From: Epithemia pelagica
Taxonomy: Eukaryota; Protista; Bacillariophyta
Direction of reading: 5' to 3'
Length of the DNA stretch: 64,000 nucleotides
Assembly (NCBI GenBank): GCA_946965045.2
Contig: OX337238.1
Location: 124,001 to 188,000 of the forward strand
Shown here: one piece after another, positions 18,230 to 26,289 of the stretch
Position numbering within the stretch: position 1 is the first letter of the stretch
Layout of the letters: every line of letters begins with the position of its first letter
Program-made: the position numbers and the translations under genes
The notes under the pieces: generated by a model
Database searches by the model: none
What the model was told of the DNA's origin: nothing
Seen by the model: only the letters and a program-made list of their open reading frames with translations

Positions 18230-19200
18230 GTCACAGTTCCGAGTCAACGATTACATCATATCGATCCAATAATGAAAATGTACATATGATAATTATATTA
18301 TATTAGATGCGAACAGATTGGTTGTAGAAGACGAAATGACCGGTACTGGGTAGGTTCCGAATAGCTACCCCTTTCAATGAGACTCCGTGATTCAGGAAAT
18401 TGCGTCTCAATGCGGTATCTCTCTCTCGAACTTTTTTGCAAATATAGGCGTTGTACCATTGGATCTATCCCGTACGAATGGAGGACAAACAATACCAGAG
18501 CACGCCGCAGCAACATTGATCTACCAGTAGTATCCACCTCATGGATTCAATCGTTTCAAATCTTACCGATATACTAGACTCTTGTCGTCCGTAATCGCAT
18601 GGATGATCCATCTCCAATCTCGACATGCCAGAGTTCGCTTCTCGGCAAACGGCCAATCCTCCATGGGCCGTGTCCCGGCATTCCCTCGGCGAGGTGCCAA
18701 GCGAGCGTGCCCATCAAGCACCATCGCAACCACTATTGGTTCCACAACAAGAAGCGGTTCGGCCGGGGTCCCCCGAAACGACCCACAGAAGGACAATGGC
18801 ACACAATAGTATAAGACCATGGACACCGGACAAGAAGAACACGAATGGATTTTTCGGCGAGGATTTGGATGACAGGAACCAAAACGACAACAAGAACCCA
18901 ACTCCTACTACTGTGTTGTCTCTCAAGAAGAGCAAGAACAAGACGAAGTGGTTCCATTGGTCCAGTGTTCTTGTAGAGACGACCCCCTCGTTACACCAGT
19001 CGTTCATGCTTACCGTTGGAGTCGTATGGCGTACGTCGTTATTGTCCACGATACCCCCACCATCCTTCTTTTGCTTTCTTGTTGTACAAGGTAGCAAGTC
19101 AACTTGTGTTTTTTCCCCTCTGGGTTCCTCCCTGTACAGGATCCAAAGCGGTTGTTTTCTTTCTTGAGGACTGGATTCCATGTACGACGACTCGTAGAAC
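18230..19200. repeat. Intergenic repeat R, copy 1, left part; continues at 25373-26226 and 32307-32450, interrupted by the two Copia elements
   Basis: Collinear with 39170-41230 and 43800-45634 once the two elements are removed. Confidence 0.85.
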
Positions 19201-19438
19201 TGTTGAAACTTCTAACAAGCCGTGCCGTAAAAGCAACTCTTTATAGGCTTATCGAACTACGTATTCTCCATTGAATGAGCGTTGGCTCTCTTGTTCGTTC
19301 TTTCGTTGCTTTTGCCACGTCTACAAACCAATGTCCATGATTCCGCATCTTGCGAATGGCCTATATCTTGCGAATGGCCAGTCGCACCAGTCGCACCTTG
19401 GTCCTCTATATTCACCGGTTGCTCTGCTATCCTCAACA
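19201..19438 (-). repeat. 3' LTR of Copia element 1
   Basis: Identical to 25135-25372 by direct comparison; ends TGTTG..CAACA. Confidence 0.97.
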
Positions 19439-22400
19439 CACTCCTTTGTGCCGAGGAATGATATTTACTATCCGATGGTACATTCATGATGATATCACGC
19501 AATTGGTAGAAGATGCGACCTTGTAATGGCTTGGTAAAAAAATCGGCGACCATCTCTTCAGTCGGACAGAATGCAATATCCATCTCTTTGCGCTTGATGC
19601 AGTCCGTGATATAAAAGTAGCGAAGGTTGATATGTTTGGTTCGCTTCGAACTGGATAGCCGTCCATTTTTCGCCAATAGAATACTACTCTGATTGTCTTG
19701 ATGTAGGGTTACGTCCTTGATCTCATGGCCTTGGGCCTGTATGAAATTCTTGGTCCAGATGATAGACGGGAGTACATCGTGTATCCCAATAAGTTCACAT
19801 TCAGTTGAACTACGGGCCACGAGTTTTTGTTTCGATGAAGCCGTCACCACTGCTCCTTTTCCCATGGTCATGAAACCCCCAGTGTGTCCTTTTAGATCGG
19901 GGTGAGTCGCATAAGATGCGTCAACCCACCACCACAGATGCATCATTGGGTCACCTTCTAGACGCAGGATCAAATCGCGTGTGGATTGTAAATACTTCAG
20001 AACCCGTCCGAGTTTGCGGTAGTCATCATCATCAGGAGCCATGACACGGGTGCTGAGAAAAGTTACGGCAGTCCGTATATCAGGGCGACCACGTTGTGCC
20101 ATATAAGCGAGTTGCATGGTCACACTGTGGAACCGGTCTGATTTTGTTTCATCCAGCTTGTGAGCCTTTGGGTTCACATGATAAAGGTGTTTGGCTGCGG
20201 GACTACGGGCTCGCCCAATCCATTCTTTTGGTAAGTCAAGTAGGATGGTCTCAAGATACGATCTCATATCCACTTGAACCACACCATCTTCCCCATAGTC
20301 GAGGAACATGCCAAGGTAATCGTGTCGAGTACCCTCAGACACTGAGATCTCGCCCAACTGTCCGAACTCCGCTCGTAGGTCATCCAAAAATTGATGAACT
20401 ACCTTGCCATCAACGTGCGAGACTTTTAAATCGTCAATATGCCACGTCACAGTGAGCTGTCGATCGTTTACTTGTTTGTTTGCAACACACGAGTCATATG
20501 GATTGATAACAAATCCCCAACTCTTGAGCACGGCGGTAAGCTTCTCCCAAAACAAACGAGCGGCACGAAGCGTGCCGTAAAGAGCTTTCAGCATCTCCAC
20601 ATAAATCACCGGTTGACCCTTCTCATAGGTCAAGAAAGGAGCGTAGGTGTCATAATCCACTTCCAGCAATAGCTCAGCCATCAACCCATCTAGTCGCATA
20701 TATACGTCGGGGTCCATGTCGGAGTGCATGAATGCCCCTGGTATATCAGCTACTGCAACCACGCGTCGTTCTAGAGCGTCAATCACGGCAGTGATGAAAA
20801 CGGATTCAGTAGCAACTGTGGGTGATGCCGATTCGGGTTTGTCAATATAAGCTCTTTGCTTTCTCCCGTCAGCGCAGCCTCTTCCTTTGATTTTGCCACA
20901 GCGCTTGCGTTTTAGGAACATCAAGTATCCTAACGCTTCTTGCACTTGGTTCCAAGTTAGATCAGTTTTATGAACAGCCCGTAGAACACCGCGGTCGTGT
21001 AACTGCTGTATCTCCACTTTCACAGCAGCCACGCCTTTATCACCGAACAACTTGATGCCTTTTTTCATGGGCATTTGTGGTGTGGCCATATTGATTTCCG
21101 TTGACACCAAATACAGGATTCCATCTCGCAAATAGCCATCGTAACGTCCATGCTGAAGCTTGTCCACTGCGGCATAAGAATGTCCGTAACGGTGGGCATA
21201 GCTTCTTTGTCGATTCGGCCGTAAATTGTATCGGGGTTCATTTTCGGGTTGGTTGTTGTTCTCCTGTTCAGGATCTACATCCATCCCTAAGTCCTCCTCT
21301 GTGAGAGATGCTTCTTCTTCGTTCTCCTCCTCTACTCCACCGGCTAGCTCCCTTCCCTCATCCTCCTCATCAGCATCCATATCCATCACAACATCCTCCA
21401 AAGCATCATCATAGGTCGAATCGTTACTGTCTTGTTCGTGCGCATCATGATATTGTTCATTGTCTACTGGGTCAGGCAGATTGGCTTCTGCCCCCACTCC
21501 TTGGATTTCCAACGGTTCAAGATTCAAATTGTCCAACGGCTGGTTGGGCTCTGGCTCGTTTATGACATTTTCAACATCAGGCACGTCATCTTCAGCTAAT
21601 TCATCCTCAACTAGATCATCGTCATACCGCAGATCCTCATCCATGTCCTGTACATCTTCATAGGACTCGTCATCATCATCAAACAGTTCATTGTTCTCGT
21701 CTAGGAACAAGATTCTGTTGTCACGATTGCCGAACGCTAGTCCCGGTTGCATTTCCTGACTTTGTGCCAACTGATGTACTCGTTGAATGACTTCTGCTGG
21801 CATAGGTAAAGCGGTGGCGTGATTCCTTGTGATTACTCTGCCGCTAGTGAGGCTAAGGAAGTAATAACTACCTTGCCTGTTACCGGTTGGCCTCAATGCG
21901 ATAGCTCCGATGGTTCTTGGGGCCATGGTGTTATCGTGCTGCTCATGGCACTGTACGTATTGGCCAAATTCATACCGACAATGTTTGTTGAAATCGACAT
22001 GCTCACCGGTCACGAGTAGACGTGGACTTTGTGTTTTGGAAATGCCGGTGTGATGTGGGAAGCAGTTTAACCAAAACGTGGCAAATTTGGCCAGTTCTAT
22101 CAACATGACCTTCGGTAGGGCATCGAAAGGAAGCGTGTTATAAACACAGCGCATCCTCTCCTTCACAGTCCTGATGTAACGTTCCACATCACCTACATGC
22201 TCGTCCCTGGCAGTGGAATTGATGGTGATGCCGAGGAGTTGAAGACTGGCTTGCATATCATCACTTGTAAATGCACCATCAGCCAACACAATCCTCGGTC
22301 TAATCCCGCCACGTCGGTAAACTGCCACAGTCTTCTTCAGGGATTGTACGATATTGGTGTCAGTGGTTGATTGTATGGCGTCTATCGTCCCGAAATGTAT

Positions 22401-24377
22401 TTTCCTTGACGTGGTGACAAGGAATGGTACATTGTTCACGTGCATGACGTCAATGGTCAATGTGACATCCTTGTGCTTCTCAGCAATACGAGGTGGTACT
22501 GTCGTGGACGTGTCGACAAATGGGGACTTACGTCTCGTTGTCTTGCCTTTGAGCGTTCCCAAATCTGGTCCGTAGATCTTCTCGGCCCTGTATACATCGT
22601 CAGTAGTGATGTTAGCGTTTGGTAGTAGGTTGTGCCTTAGGATATGAAGATAATCCTTGGTAGAAGGCCGTCCTATCTTCGCTAGGAGTGATCTGGCCAG
22701 CTTGGCTCTACGAATTTCTTCCGGGGAGTAGGAATCTTCGTTTTCGCTAACAGTTGTTACGAAGCTACTCTGTAACGTCGATGTATCCAGGTAGAATAAA
22801 CCTTCTGGGCTTGGATTGAACTTGTGTTTTAGCCTACCAGTGGCTCGGTCATGTAAGGCAAATGAATTTCCACGGTCGCTGTCATATTTGATGTGAAATC
22901 TTGTGTGTGCGTTGTTTAGGGAGATGATGTTGGCTGGACCCTCAGGATCATGCCATACGATGCCATATCCAGGCAGGAGTCCTCGCAACTGAAGAGTCCT
23001 CTGTCCGGCATGACTCTGAATGACGATGGGAGTCTCAGACGAGTGAATATTTTTTAATAAGGATGGATCTTTGATGATGTCAACGGTGGACTGATTGTCC
23101 AGTAACAGCCATTGAGGGGGAATGCTAGCCTGCATGGTAGAGGAAGAGAAAACATAATCAGGTGAGTCGCAGTTGACGGTTGAGCCCCTGTTTGATGAGG
23201 TTAGCACACCTCGATTGGATTCATTGTTACCCTCGGCTTGTGAGTTGGTTCGATTTGAGCGACTCTGTGTTGTCGATGCTTGGGAGCCACTTGCATGTGC
23301 TCCTGTTGCAGTTGTTGCATTGGAGTGGCCTGTCATGGTGGAATCGGGCAAACTCGTCTCTCCACTTGTTACATACGCCACACCGGTGGCGTTGTCGGGC
23401 TGACCGTTGCTCTGACCAGGATTGTTCTTTGGTTTTCCTGTCATTCGATTGTCCAGGATCGCACGAGCATTGGCAAGCGTCTTGGGGTATACATTCTGTC
23501 CATCCAAGAACATATTTTGCAAATGTGCTTCGTACTCCTTGTTGCCACAAGATCGGATGAATCGAATGGCAATACAACGATTTTGGGCGTCCTCGTGGTC
23601 GTCGGAAGAAGGTGTTGTGTGTTTCTTTTCCTGCGCCACTCGTTCCAACATGTCCTTATCGTACAGGACAATCCCTGCTTCATTCATGACCTTGACTTTG
23701 GCTCGGAATACCTCGTAATATGAATGGAGGCTTTGATTATTTCGTCGCCTCAGACTATAGAAATCCTCCTTGAGCTTATCTCGGGCGACAAGAGTGAATA
23801 TGCGTCCGGAATCAAAGGTGAATGTGATTTGCTTGATGAGTTTCAAGAGATCCACACCGTCACGCATCTTCTTGATCTCTCCAAAGGTCTCGTGGGCCTG
23901 TAGCTTATCCTTGAGTAGCGGAGTACACTGTCCCATAATCAAGCTGTATAGAGCTGCCCGAAAGTTTTTGTAGAGGACCATTTGATCTTGGCGTGCTTTG
24001 TACGCCATCTTCCACTCTTCCACTTGGATCATATCTGTGGGGTCTTTTGGTTTTGTTGCTTCTTCTGGGTCGGGTAGTTCCAATGCTTCGAGTGCTTGTT
24101 GGAACTCTTGATTGTGTCGATCAAAATTACTACCGACGTAGCCGATCAATAACTCGACGTTTCGTAGATAGCGCTTCGATTGCGGGTCCTCACTGTAGTC
24201 GAATATGCATTCTTTAAGCGACGGTTCTTGGCCTTGAAATCTAGGCGAGTTGGATTGTTGAGCCTGATTCTGCCATCCTCGTCCTCTTCCTCGTCCGCCT
24301 CTGCCTTGACGTTGTCCACTCGACCGGGAGCTAGACTCAACCGTGTCTGGACGATTTGCGTTGTCTTGTTGAGACAT
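19257..24377 (-). CDS. gag-pol: Gag-Pol polyprotein, 1706 aa, Copia order
   Basis: Protease WLLLDNQST; integrase TIDVMH, LADGAF, VERYIRTVKE; RT KGRGCADG and WHIDDLK; RNase H WVDASYA, STECE, QDNQS, ADFFTKPL. Confidence 0.97.
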   Translation of the reverse strand: MSQQDNANRPDTVESSSRSSGQRQGRGGRGRGRGWQNQAQQSNSPRFQGQEPSLKECIFDYSEDPQSKRYLRNVELLIGYVGSNFDRHNQEFQQALEALELPDPEEATKPKDPTDMIQVEEWKMAYKARQDQMVLYKNFRAALYSLIMGQCTPLLKDKLQAHETFGEIKKMRDGVDLLKLIKQITFTFDSGRIFTLVARDKLKEDFYSLRRRNNQSLHSYYEVFRAKVKVMNEAGIVLYDKDMLERVAQEKKHTTPSSDDHEDAQNRCIAIRFIRSCGNKEYEAHLQNMFLDGQNVYPKTLANARAILDNRMTGKPKNNPGQSNGQPDNATGVAYVTSGETSLPDSTMTGHSNATTATGAHASGSQASTTQSRSNRTNSQAEGNNESNRGVLTSSNRGSTVNCDSPDYVFSSSTMQASIPPQWLLLDNQSTVDIIKDPSLLKNIHSSETPIVIQSHAGQRTLQLRGLLPGYGIVWHDPEGPANIISLNNAHTRFHIKYDSDRGNSFALHDRATGRLKHKFNPSPEGLFYLDTSTLQSSFVTTVSENEDSYSPEEIRRAKLARSLLAKIGRPSTKDYLHILRHNLLPNANITTDDVYRAEKIYGPDLGTLKGKTTRRKSPFVDTSTTVPPRIAEKHKDVTLTIDVMHVNNVPFLVTTSRKIHFGTIDAIQSTTDTNIVQSLKKTVAVYRRGGIRPRIVLADGAFTSDDMQASLQLLGITINSTARDEHVGDVERYIRTVKERMRCVYNTLPFDALPKVMLIELAKFATFWLNCFPHHTGISKTQSPRLLVTGEHVDFNKHCRYEFGQYVQCHEQHDNTMAPRTIGAIALRPTGNRQGSYYFLSLTSGRVITRNHATALPMPAEVIQRVHQLAQSQEMQPGLAFGNRDNRILFLDENNELFDDDDESYEDVQDMDEDLRYDDDLVEDELAEDDVPDVENVINEPEPNQPLDNLNLEPLEIQGVGAEANLPDPVDNEQYHDAHEQDSNDSTYDDALEDVVMDMDADEEDEGRELAGGVEEENEEEASLTEEDLGMDVDPEQENNNQPENEPRYNLRPNRQRSYAHRYGHSYAAVDKLQHGRYDGYLRDGILYLVSTEINMATPQMPMKKGIKLFGDKGVAAVKVEIQQLHDRGVLRAVHKTDLTWNQVQEALGYLMFLKRKRCGKIKGRGCADGRKQRAYIDKPESASPTVATESVFITAVIDALERRVVAVADIPGAFMHSDMDPDVYMRLDGLMAELLLEVDYDTYAPFLTYEKGQPVIYVEMLKALYGTLRAARLFWEKLTAVLKSWGFVINPYDSCVANKQVNDRQLTVTWHIDDLKVSHVDGKVVHQFLDDLRAEFGQLGEISVSEGTRHDYLGMFLDYGEDGVVQVDMRSYLETILLDLPKEWIGRARSPAAKHLYHVNPKAHKLDETKSDRFHSVTMQLAYMAQRGRPDIRTAVTFLSTRVMAPDDDDYRKLGRVLKYLQSTRDLILRLEGDPMMHLWWWVDASYATHPDLKGHTGGFMTMGKGAVVTASSKQKLVARSSTECELIGIHDVLPSIIWTKNFIQAQGHEIKDVTLHQDNQSSILLAKNGRLSSSKRTKHINLRYFYITDCIKRKEMDIAFCPTEEMVADFFTKPLQGRIFYQLRDIIMNVPSDSKYHSSAQRSVLRIAEQPVNIEDQGATGATGHSQDIGHSQDAESWTLVCRRGKSNERTNKRANAHSMENT

Positions 24378-24382
24378 CTCGT

Positions 24383-25075
24383 TTAAACAATCGCAATGCT
24401 GTCACGATGGCGGCGGTGTTCTTCTGTATCTTTGGTGATGGGATTCCAAATCTTGATAAAGTGATATAATGTGCCGTGGCGCGACACTGTGCCTTGGAGA
24501 TGTGTTCGTCCCACTGTTTCCTTCAACTTGAGAGTATTCAATACCCAAACGCGAGTTCCAATTGGAATCCACCGTGGGAGTACGCCTCTTTGTGGTGGAA
24601 TATCGGGGATGATTGTTTCTGTTTCGATTTCACCGTCCGGTGTTTCTGGGCTCAGATCAACGAGAGCGACTGGAGATGCGCGACGATCTTGATTCTCTTC
24701 CGAATTGTTTTCTAGGTTCGGGTTTTCTTGGTTCGGTTCCACTAGATACGCGCTGTGCTCTGGGTATGTAGCCGCGCAGGATGATGGGCCTCGCTCAGCC
24801 CGCTTGATTTTGTCTAGCAACGTGCGTCGCTTTTCCTGTATCTCCTCGAAGATCAGCTGTTTCCGAATCTCCGTTTCCTCGTAATCGTTGTCTCTTTCGA
24901 TTTCTCGTTGTCGCTCCAGTGCAGCGATGGCTTCGCGATGCTGCGCCTCCTTGGTGCGAAAGCGTTGTTGGTAGCGCTGTTCCGCTTCGTGTAAGAGATC
25001 CTCTTGTTCGATAGTGAGTTGGGCCAGTTCCGATAATAAAGATTGTACGCGGTCACTTGTGCCCTCTTCACTCAT
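24383..25075 (-). CDS. Extra ORF1 of Copia element 1 (230 aa): coiled-coil plus small beta-barrel-like C-terminal domain
   Basis: ATG-initiated ORF between the PBS and gag, homologous to ORF1 of element 2 (IGxRVxV..GTVxRH..WNPIT..EE). Confidence 0.8.
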   Translation of the reverse strand: MSEEGTSDRVQSLLSELAQLTIEQEDLLHEAEQRYQQRFRTKEAQHREAIAALERQREIERDNDYEETEIRKQLIFEEIQEKRRTLLDKIKRAERGPSSCAATYPEHSAYLVEPNQENPNLENNSEENQDRRASPVALVDLSPETPDGEIETETIIPDIPPQRGVLPRWIPIGTRVWVLNTLKLKETVGRTHLQGTVSRHGTLYHFIKIWNPITKDTEEHRRHRDSIAIV

Positions 25076-25120
25076 AAGAGTACTTCACGTCAACAACGGA
25101 GGTACTTAGTGTAATGAATT

Positions 25121-25134
25121 TTCAATGGAGAATA
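25121..25134 (-). promoter_or_regulatory. Non-tRNA primer-binding site of element 1 (sense TATTCTCCATTGAA)
   Basis: Abuts the 5' LTR, has no TGG, and is a perfect complement of LTR segment 25196-25209. Confidence 0.85.
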
Positions 25135-25372
25135 TGTTGAAACTTCTAACAAGCCGTGCCGTAAAAGCAACTCTTTATAGGCTTATCGAACTACGTATTC
25201 TCCATTGAATGAGCGTTGGCTCTCTTGTTCGTTCTTTCGTTGCTTTTGCCACGTCTACAAACCAATGTCCATGATTCCGCATCTTGCGAATGGCCTATAT
25301 CTTGCGAATGGCCAGTCGCACCAGTCGCACCTTGGTCCTCTATATTCACCGGTTGCTCTGCTATCCTCAACA
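25135..25372 (-). repeat. 5' LTR of Copia element 1
   Basis: Identical to 19201-19438 and followed by the AGAAC TSD. Confidence 0.97.
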
Positions 25373-26289
25373 AGAACCGTCATCCAGGTCGTTCCGCAAT
25401 GGTCCACACAAGACAAAACGAGAACAAAGACTCCTCAGCTCTAGGTAGTGTCCTGATATTACTATATAGGATGCTGGCGCCAACCAACCAGAAATGAGGT
25501 TTTCTTTGCCATCACGATTGGACCGCAGGGCGACTGTCACCCCGTGCCGCGAGACAACCAGGTTCCATGGGCGTGTCACTACGACTAGAGAGCAATGGGG
25601 AGAACTGAAACTACGACCAGAAACCGGCAAACTGCTGGCAATCCCAAGAGACGTTTGATTGGTGGTATATCCTTTTCCATGCTTCTGCTGCTACTGCTGG
25701 AATCCTGGTTGGTCAGACACAACCAAAAGAATTTGGATTTGAGTAAAGAGAAGAGCACATTCATTTTGTGAGAGACCGTCGTGGCTTGCACCCAAGTCGG
25801 CCCTGCCGGCGCGGGAGTAGGCGACCTCGCGACCGACGAGACCCATTTCGTCTGTCCATCGATGCGACCTTCATCGGAAGAGAGATTCTTCGCGCACGTC
25901 TCGAGTACTTTGGAGCGTTGGGATAATTTTCTACGAACTATATTCTTCGTATCAACATGGTCTGTAGACGCTGTAGGTGTACACGTCTGGAGATGCGACA
26001 TTCTCTGGGATTCTCCCAGCGGGGTTGGTGACACCTTGGACGTGCGTACGTGCGTTGATTTTCTCATTGGAACCCGCTCAGGATTGGACGAGAACTGTGC
26101 CGGAGTGAATGCGAACCCCCAAGTTCTTGGCGCGAACCGAGTTCTCGTTGGATTGGCGTAGTTCGGTTTGGTGTCACGAGGTAGAACGCAAGAGAAGACC
26201 CCAAGGGATCATTCCTTATTCGACACTGTTGAAACCAGTCAACCGATCGTGCTGTACAGGCAACAAAAGGAAACCAATTTACTTCTATT

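Follow-up and report, generated by a model that had tools for sequence, protein, structure and literature searches.

The window, i.e. the whole stretch of 64,000 nt of DNA analysed here, carries on its minus strand an intact LTR retrotransposon of 6,172 bp (19201-25372), the features of which are collected in Table 1. The element belongs to the Ty1/Copia group (Pseudoviridae). Its LTRs have TG..CA ends, it is flanked by a target duplication of 5 bp, a polypurine tract precedes the 3′ LTR, and its reverse transcriptase (RT) is of the Copia type, matching RVT_2 with an E-value of 2.9e-13 and a score of 50.4 bits against the curated cut-off of 31.6 (Pfam); the integrase lies upstream of the RT, which gives the domain order of Copia. 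This integrase was recognised by its fold. When pieces of pol were searched against Pfam at E<=1 only RVT_2 was returned, and neither phmmer nor a 14-sequence profile gave any match in the PDB; the AlphaFold model, made from an alignment of 13 homologues, has a mean pLDDT of 80, and the best Foldseek matches of pol residues 560-880 are the retroviral integrases of RSV, MVV and MMTV (E ~1e-9, probability 1.00). As the LTRs are identical and the ORFs intact, the element is young.

Table 1. Features of the Ty1/Copia element in the window (positions are those of the window)
Feature	Position	Strand	Remarks
5′ LTR	25135..25372	-	238 nt, TGTTG...CAACA; direct repeat 100% identical to 19201-19438
3′ LTR	19201..19438	-	preceded by PPT-like AAAGGAG+TG at 19447-19439
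Target-site duplication GTTCT	upstream copy 25373..25377, downstream copy 19196-19200	-	read directly
Conserved U3 box ACGTGGCAAAAGCAAC	25239..25254	-	G-box-like with an ACGT core; 30-45 nt ahead of the predicted start
Initiator-like TCATT	25208..25212	-	predicted transcription start 25209 or 25210, inferred from the sequence
Putative self-primer TTCAATGGAGAATA	25196..25209	-	14 nt with which the mRNA is predicted to begin, at the start of R
Conserved R/U5 core TATAAAGAGTTGCTTTTACGGCA	25157..25179	-	between primer and PBS
Primer-binding site TATTCTCCATTGAA	25121..25134	-	starts at the first base past the 5′ LTR
gag-like ORF	24383..25075	-	230 aa, no Pfam match
pol ORF	19257..24377	-	1706 aa; stop TAG 19259-19257, inside the 3′ LTR
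Integrase	21738..22700	-	pol aa 560-880; recognised by fold
Copia-type reverse transcriptase	20241..20903	-	pol aa 1159-1379; Pfam RVT_2

The gag-like and pol ORFs are in different frames, pol lying at -1 relative to gag. From 24401, about 19 nt ahead of the gag stop codon (24385-24383), the pol frame is open, and a TTTAAAC heptamer (24387-24381) spans this stop codon in a register that is not canonical for -1 slippage from the gag frame. At its other end pol continues across the polypurine tract and all of U3, running 60 codons into the 3′ LTR, and its TAG sits 2 nt past the copy of the primer segment held by that LTR (19262-19275). In the relatives L079, L080, L083, L084, L132 and L133 (see below) pol likewise ends no more than about 30 nt from the primer segment; with pol ending near this segment across lineages, U3 is coding sequence in this clade.

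On the sense strand the 5′ LTR ends in ..TTTCAACA and is followed directly by TATTCTCCATTGAA, at the position of a primer-binding site (PBS). No TGG is present in these 14 nt after the 5′ LTR, which are instead the exact reverse complement (14/14) of TTCAATGGAGAATA, a segment of the LTR itself that directly follows AACGCTCA and is separated from the PBS by 61 nt. This arrangement had been described in the earlier note on this DNA, and the 14-nt PBS, the sequences and coordinates, the LTR partner, the 61-nt spacing and the absent TGG all proved correct on re-reading. By our own arithmetic, the chance that the exact complement of a fixed 14-mer occurs in an LTR of 238 nt is ~225/4^14, i.e. ~1e-6. 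When the 60.5-Mb genome was searched for this pattern, all 32 exact copies of the 14-mer were located within copies of the window element, in the LTR or the PBS, with none outside them, for example in a tRNA gene; a control pattern consisting of the 14-mer in reverse order had no match in the genome.

Relatives within the genome were collected by LTR search (76-96% identity), and the conserved 23-nt R/U5 core TATAAAGAGTTGCTTTTACGGCA was used as a probe in a genome 23-mer search, which finds 64 LTRs (63 exact copies and one with a single mismatch). Alignment of the junctions between 5′ LTR and PBS revealed four haplotypes, designated subfamilies A, B, C and E, in each of which the pair is perfect (Table 2). 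The subfamilies differ at positions 4, 6, 11 and 12 of the 14, and each time the difference is matched on both sides. Over the 16 distinct 5′ LTR-PBS segments, standard pairs occupy 99.6% of cells and both-side changes are seen in 4 of the 14 pairs. The covariation score was reached by none of 500 shuffles, and pairing falls to 38-53% when the partner is slid by 1-3 columns. Fresh one-sided mutations are seen in single copies, L061 having a G.U pair and L063 a C in place of A as the last base of the primer, and look as should be expected for decay after insertion. A candidate fifth PBS variant was rejected: it is a loose end in DNA contigs, with a consensus agreement of 0.87, and is absent from this assembly.

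Two loci of the family have an unusual arrangement. At L064 (G000:C9:2574761-2575381; subfamily E) the 5′ LTR upstream of ..GAGAATACGTAG is swapped for unrelated sequence, the copy having lost its own primer segment and kept its PBS; the partner LTR is 14 kb away, and this copy has probably undergone rearrangement or received a nested insertion. At L039/L040 (G000:C9:2865109-2865569) two family LTRs are arranged head to tail without an intervening internal region; the second is without its first 16 nt, and both end in TAAC, not CAAC.

Table 2. LTR segments and the primer-binding sites paired with them in the subfamilies of the window element and in more distant lineages
Subfamily or lineage	LTR segment	PBS	Length
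Subfamily A	TTCAATGGAGAATA	TATTCTCCATTGAA	14 nt
Subfamily B	TTCTAAGGAGATTA	TAATCTCCTTAGAA	14 nt
Subfamily C	TTCAATGGAGTTTA	TAAACTCCATTGAA	14 nt
Subfamily E	TTCTAAGGAGAATA	TATTCTCCTTAGAA	14 nt
L079	TTCTATTGGAAATA	TATTTCCAATAGAA	14 nt
L080	ATTCGATGAGTAAAA	TTTTACTCATCGAAT	15 nt
L082	AACTCGAATTAAATTA	TAATTTAATTCGAGTT	16 nt
L083	AGACTTTTAGATTTA	TAAATCTAAAAGTCT	15 nt
L084	GTTTTAACTTTAGA	TCTAAAGTTAAAAC	14 nt
L085-87	CTCTATTCGATTTA	TAAATCGAATAGAG	14 nt
L132	TAATTTCGTAGAGATTA	complement of the LTR segment	17 nt
L133	CTCTATAGCGAAAA	complement of the LTR segment	14 nt
L134	TTCCGTAAGTTTTA	complement of the LTR segment	14 nt
L135	CTTTGTAGTGAA	complement of the LTR segment	12 nt, or 14 with one G.U

More distant relatives were identified by protein search with the RT region, which yielded hundreds of full-length elements, 120 of which were listed; the nearest named relative among the matches listed is from the diatom Mayamaea pseudoterrestris. 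We compared the DNA around eleven relatives with RT identities of 54-74%, taken from two ENA genome assemblies, three Logan runs, a JGI sample, an ENA metagenome and the NCBI Mayamaea assembly. In 10 of the 11 the PBS begins at the first base past the ..CAACA end of the LTR and is a perfect complement, over 12-17 nt, of a segment located 46-100 nt before the end of the same LTR (Table 2; L134 and L135 are circularly permuted LTR assemblies). These ten lineages have PBS sequences that bear no relation to one another. The exception is L081 (Mayamaea pseudoterrestris, GCA_027923505.1, BROI01000014.1), in which the LTRs are identical and the target duplication is ACCAG; here the match extends over only 7-8 nt (GAGAAAAT/ATTTTCTC), and either a shorter primer is needed or a different priming mode is used in that branch. 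When the leader RNA, beginning at the predicted start and ending a little beyond the PBS, was folded, a stem closing the 5′ end on the PBS was predicted for the window element (z = -4.3) and for seven other lineages (z = -4.4 to -6.4), and the leader of L081 gave no signal (z = 0.15).

For priming, the 3′ end of the annealed primer has to sit on the first base past U5. The earlier note had claimed that the primer's 3′ end abuts U5, and this is upheld by the comparison, the paired site starting at the first base past the LTR in every lineage. Its claim that the PBS pairs with RNA derived from the element's own LTR, and not with a tRNA, is strongly supported by the compensatory changes in four subfamilies and by ten lineages each of which matches itself. 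The PBS adjoins the 5′ LTR and complements sequence within this LTR, and none of the 61 tRNAs compared matches it better than chance.

The position at which transcription begins can be inferred from the sequence as 25209 or 25210. In the four subfamilies and the ten lineages, complementarity begins at the A of (T/C)CA or 1-2 nt later (GCTCA/TTC.., GTCTC/ATTC.., GCTC/AGAC.., TCTCA/CTC.., GCCA/TAA.. and ATCA/TTC.., where the slash marks the start of the match). That pairing ends at (T/C)CA fits an RNA 5′ end at this point, as selection for pairing should stop with the RNA. The classical initiator, YYA(+1), would make A25210 the first base. In diatoms an Inr-like motif, TCAH(+1)W, has been described, according to which +1 would be T25209; this motif is present in 68% of P. 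tricornutum 5′ flanks (PMC4686930) and, being short and common, argues only weakly by itself for a start at the segment. The analogy with an oomycete-type initiator that the earlier note drew is weak, given that the INR+FPR block is reported to be absent from the diatom T. pseudonana (PMC3599244). Since the pol stop codon lies 2 nt past the segment, the transcript runs beyond the segment at its 3′ end, and if transcription also starts at the segment, then the segment would be in R at both ends, as strand transfer requires. The U3 box ACGTGGCAAAAGCAAC is nearly identical in subfamilies A, B and C, the rest of U3 having ~76% identity; subfamily E has an interrupted variant, and a related box, ACGTGGCA, occurs in L079 and L085. 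From its position, this ACGTGGC box is probably a promoter element. The public runs found to contain the element are three in number (X1-X3), belong to one study and consist of DNA contigs, with records of up to 500 kb; compared with the element, they gave neither starts nor ends. Short Logan and JGI contigs were considered as transcripts and rejected, as their ends match neither a start nor a poly(A) site.

We conclude, with a probability of roughly 0.8, that the window element initiates minus-strand DNA by Tf1-like self-priming. In the mechanism that we propose, transcription would start at the TCA/TT initiator in the 5′ LTR (25209/25210) and the first 14 nt of the RNA would fold over the 61-nt R/U5 loop onto the PBS, whereupon the RNase H of the element would cut the RNA after ..GAAUA. 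Extension of the 3′-OH would then copy U5 and R, and the strong-stop product, ~61 nt of DNA attached to a 14-nt RNA primer, would transfer to the 3′ R, which also holds the primer segment. The primer would stay on the minus strand and be copied in plus-strand synthesis, with the result that the PBS of the progeny would be a copy of the primer. In Tf1 the primer is not removed, and the progeny PBS is copied from it. If the PBS is indeed recopied from the primer in each cycle, then each lineage would be expected to have a perfect but private pair, with fast drift, and this agrees with what is seen; such private primer/PBS pairs, if true, could insulate co-resident families from each other. We know of no Copia enzyme for which RNase H cleavage of an RNA duplex has been shown.

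Three other sources of the primer, or roles for the pairing, have to be weighed against this reading. One is that the primer is self-derived and acts in trans or comes from the 3′ end: cleavage of the 3′-end copy or of a second, co-packaged RNA would release it, and the 5′ segment would lie in U3, ahead of the true start. That the segment is transcribed at the 3′ end is certain, as pol stops 2 nt beyond it there, and a TATAAAG at 25179-25173, between the primer and the PBS, counts against a start at the segment if it is a TATA box, as transcription would then start ~30 nt downstream of it, past the primer segment. Such a start would, however, leave an R of no more than ~15 nt, i.e. almost none; TATAAAG is not conserved in distant lineages; and the stop of complementarity at (T/C)CA, in the window family as in the ten lineages, would be otherwise unexplained. 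We therefore regard this explanation as unlikely, and read TATAAAG as part of the conserved R/U5 core and perhaps as a poly(A) signal.

Conserved long-range pairings around the PBS are a property of retroviral and Ty1 leaders, which lends some weight to the view that the pairing reported here is leader structure only (serving packaging or dimerisation, or as an analogue of the U5-leader stem) and that the real primer is another cellular RNA. The GalEa Copia elements, in which a conserved hairpin takes the place of the PBS (PMC5445492), can be cited in the same sense. A role confined to leader structure nevertheless seems improbable to us: it does not account for a paired site placed at exactly the first base past the LTR in every lineage, there is no other conserved candidate PBS downstream, the PBS is unrelated between lineages, so that no shared cellular primer fits, and no tRNA match exceeds chance. 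The last of these points derives from a host tRNA scan for PBS complementarity, put forward as a check in the earlier note and now run, in which the longest uninterrupted match between a PBS haplotype and any of 61 distinct tRNAs of this genome was 7-8 nt, as against 5-9 nt for shuffled 14-mers. The tRNA set is incomplete, with 63 of 1840 candidates scored and many of these organellar, and priming by tRNA halves is known in several Copia lineages (PMC6317226). Even so, we hold it to be very unlikely that a tRNA or an internal tRNA fragment primes the window element, as happens in Drosophila copia, Osser, Bianca and Ty5. Besides the absence of TGG and the restriction of the 14-mer to the element's own copies, the four PBS haplotypes and at least 10 unrelated ones each track their own LTR and not a host gene, and a PBS that differs between co-resident families and follows its own LTR cannot have a host tRNA as its partner. 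A chance inverted repeat without function, in favour of which there is nothing beyond the A/T-rich sequence, is refuted by the comparative data, as a pairing expected at ~1e-6 for one element recurs with differing sequences in 14 haplotypes or lineages and none of the 500 shuffles attained its covariation score.

Returning to self-priming from the 5′ end of the RNA, we incline, by a small margin over even odds, towards the view that it is the shared replication mode of the whole of this highly divergent diatom Copia lineage, on the basis of at least 14 haplotypes or lineages, from this genome and from five other assemblies or environmental samples, with RT identities down to 54%. If so, this would be the first such case in stramenopiles, and it would either have originated independently of Tf1/sushi and of the plant TAR lineage or have been retained from an ancestral self-priming LTR element. 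For sequence data alone the evidence is strong, as the same architecture is found in many lineages that share no primer sequence. The mechanism would thereby reach a third major group of eukaryotes and a branch of Copia that is very divergent, with consequences for the question whether LTR elements inherited self-priming from a common ancestor or gained it repeatedly.

To our knowledge, self-primed reverse transcription has been demonstrated experimentally for Tf1 only. There, the PBS is bound by the first 11 nt of the RNA, and the cut made by RNase H falls between nt 11 and nt 12 (PMC7175516). The window element resembles Tf1 and Tf2 of S. pombe and the other Ty3/Gypsy chromoviruses of the Tf1/sushi group (Tcn1) in having a PBS that adjoins the 5′ LTR and complements the start, here predicted, of its own transcript, and as in Tf1 the leader folds the 5′ end onto the PBS, again by prediction. 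The Tf1 primer is freed by RNase H at the end of the duplex, a step that is only proposed here. Unlike the 11 nt of Tf1, the duplex is of 12-17 nt, with 14 in the window element, and unlike the Tf1/sushi elements the window element has an RVT_2 RT, an integrase ahead of the RT and a diatom-type stramenopile as its host. The Tf1/sushi clade is defined by a Gypsy RT, the order PR-RT-RH-IN and a chromodomain; the window element lacks this combination, and no chromodomain was detected in it. It probably works like Tf1/sushi elements, without being a member of their clade.

The earlier note knew of self-priming only in Tf1/sushi Gypsy elements and not in Copia, and asked for a literature check; this check shows otherwise, as self-priming has been predicted for 89% of 203 elements of the plant Ty1/copia TAR lineage, in a survey that also cites an earlier proposal for Houba and Osr-1 (PMC6317226). 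Outside the Tf1/sushi Gypsy elements, then, self-priming rests on sequence predictions (plant TAR Copia). The TAR elements, including Houba and Osr-1, are like the window element in being of the Copia type and in the in silico nature of the evidence. TAR is a land-plant lineage within the Tork group, and the pol of the window element is very divergent, with only RVT_2 seen by Pfam; compared by description, the two may have an independent origin or a shared ancestry. The fungal GalEa Copia elements, with their ‘Conserved Hairpin Site’, are also without a tRNA-type PBS and have a self-complementary feature at the PBS position (PMC5445492). The feature in GalEa is a local one, a palindrome or hairpin on the downstream side of the LTR, whereas the partner in the window element is inside the LTR, at the predicted start of the RNA; the GalEa authors found no LTR (U5) complement to the hairpin site and rejected the Tf1 model (PMC5445492).

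Among known diatom elements, the CoDi group of Maumus et al. (2009) comprises diatom-specific, highly divergent Ty1/copia-like elements whose LTRs are near-identical and whose gag and pol are separated by one stop or frameshift (PMC2806351). The window element has in common with them a diatom-type host, a divergent Copia sequence, near-identical LTRs and a break of frame between gag and pol, and probably belongs to the same broad lineage. The text of the CoDi paper does not mention a PBS or priming (PMC2806351), and a literature search on self-priming together with diatoms or CoDi found nothing relevant. The mechanism, then, is already known, and its proposed occurrence in a diatom Copia lineage and host appears to be unreported; the support from comparison is unusually clean. 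In practical terms, pipelines for LTR annotation in which a tRNA-type PBS is obligatory will score these abundant diatom elements wrongly. As young elements with identical LTRs and intact ORFs are present, a transformable diatom with relatives of them could become a second experimental system.

The R/U5 core between primer and PBS, which may be a poly(A) signal or a structural element, is itself partly conserved at greater distances. The sequence GTTGC(C/T)TT(T/C)AC(A/G)GCA from this core recurs in the distant lineages L079 and L082, with a looser form in L080. In runs X1-X3, summed word depth over 25146-25179 is ~40,000, compared with ~1,400 in the interior of the element (~30x), and ~400x that of unique flank, from which it follows that the sequences sharing the R/U5 core far outnumber the 64 LTRs that the exact 23-mer located.
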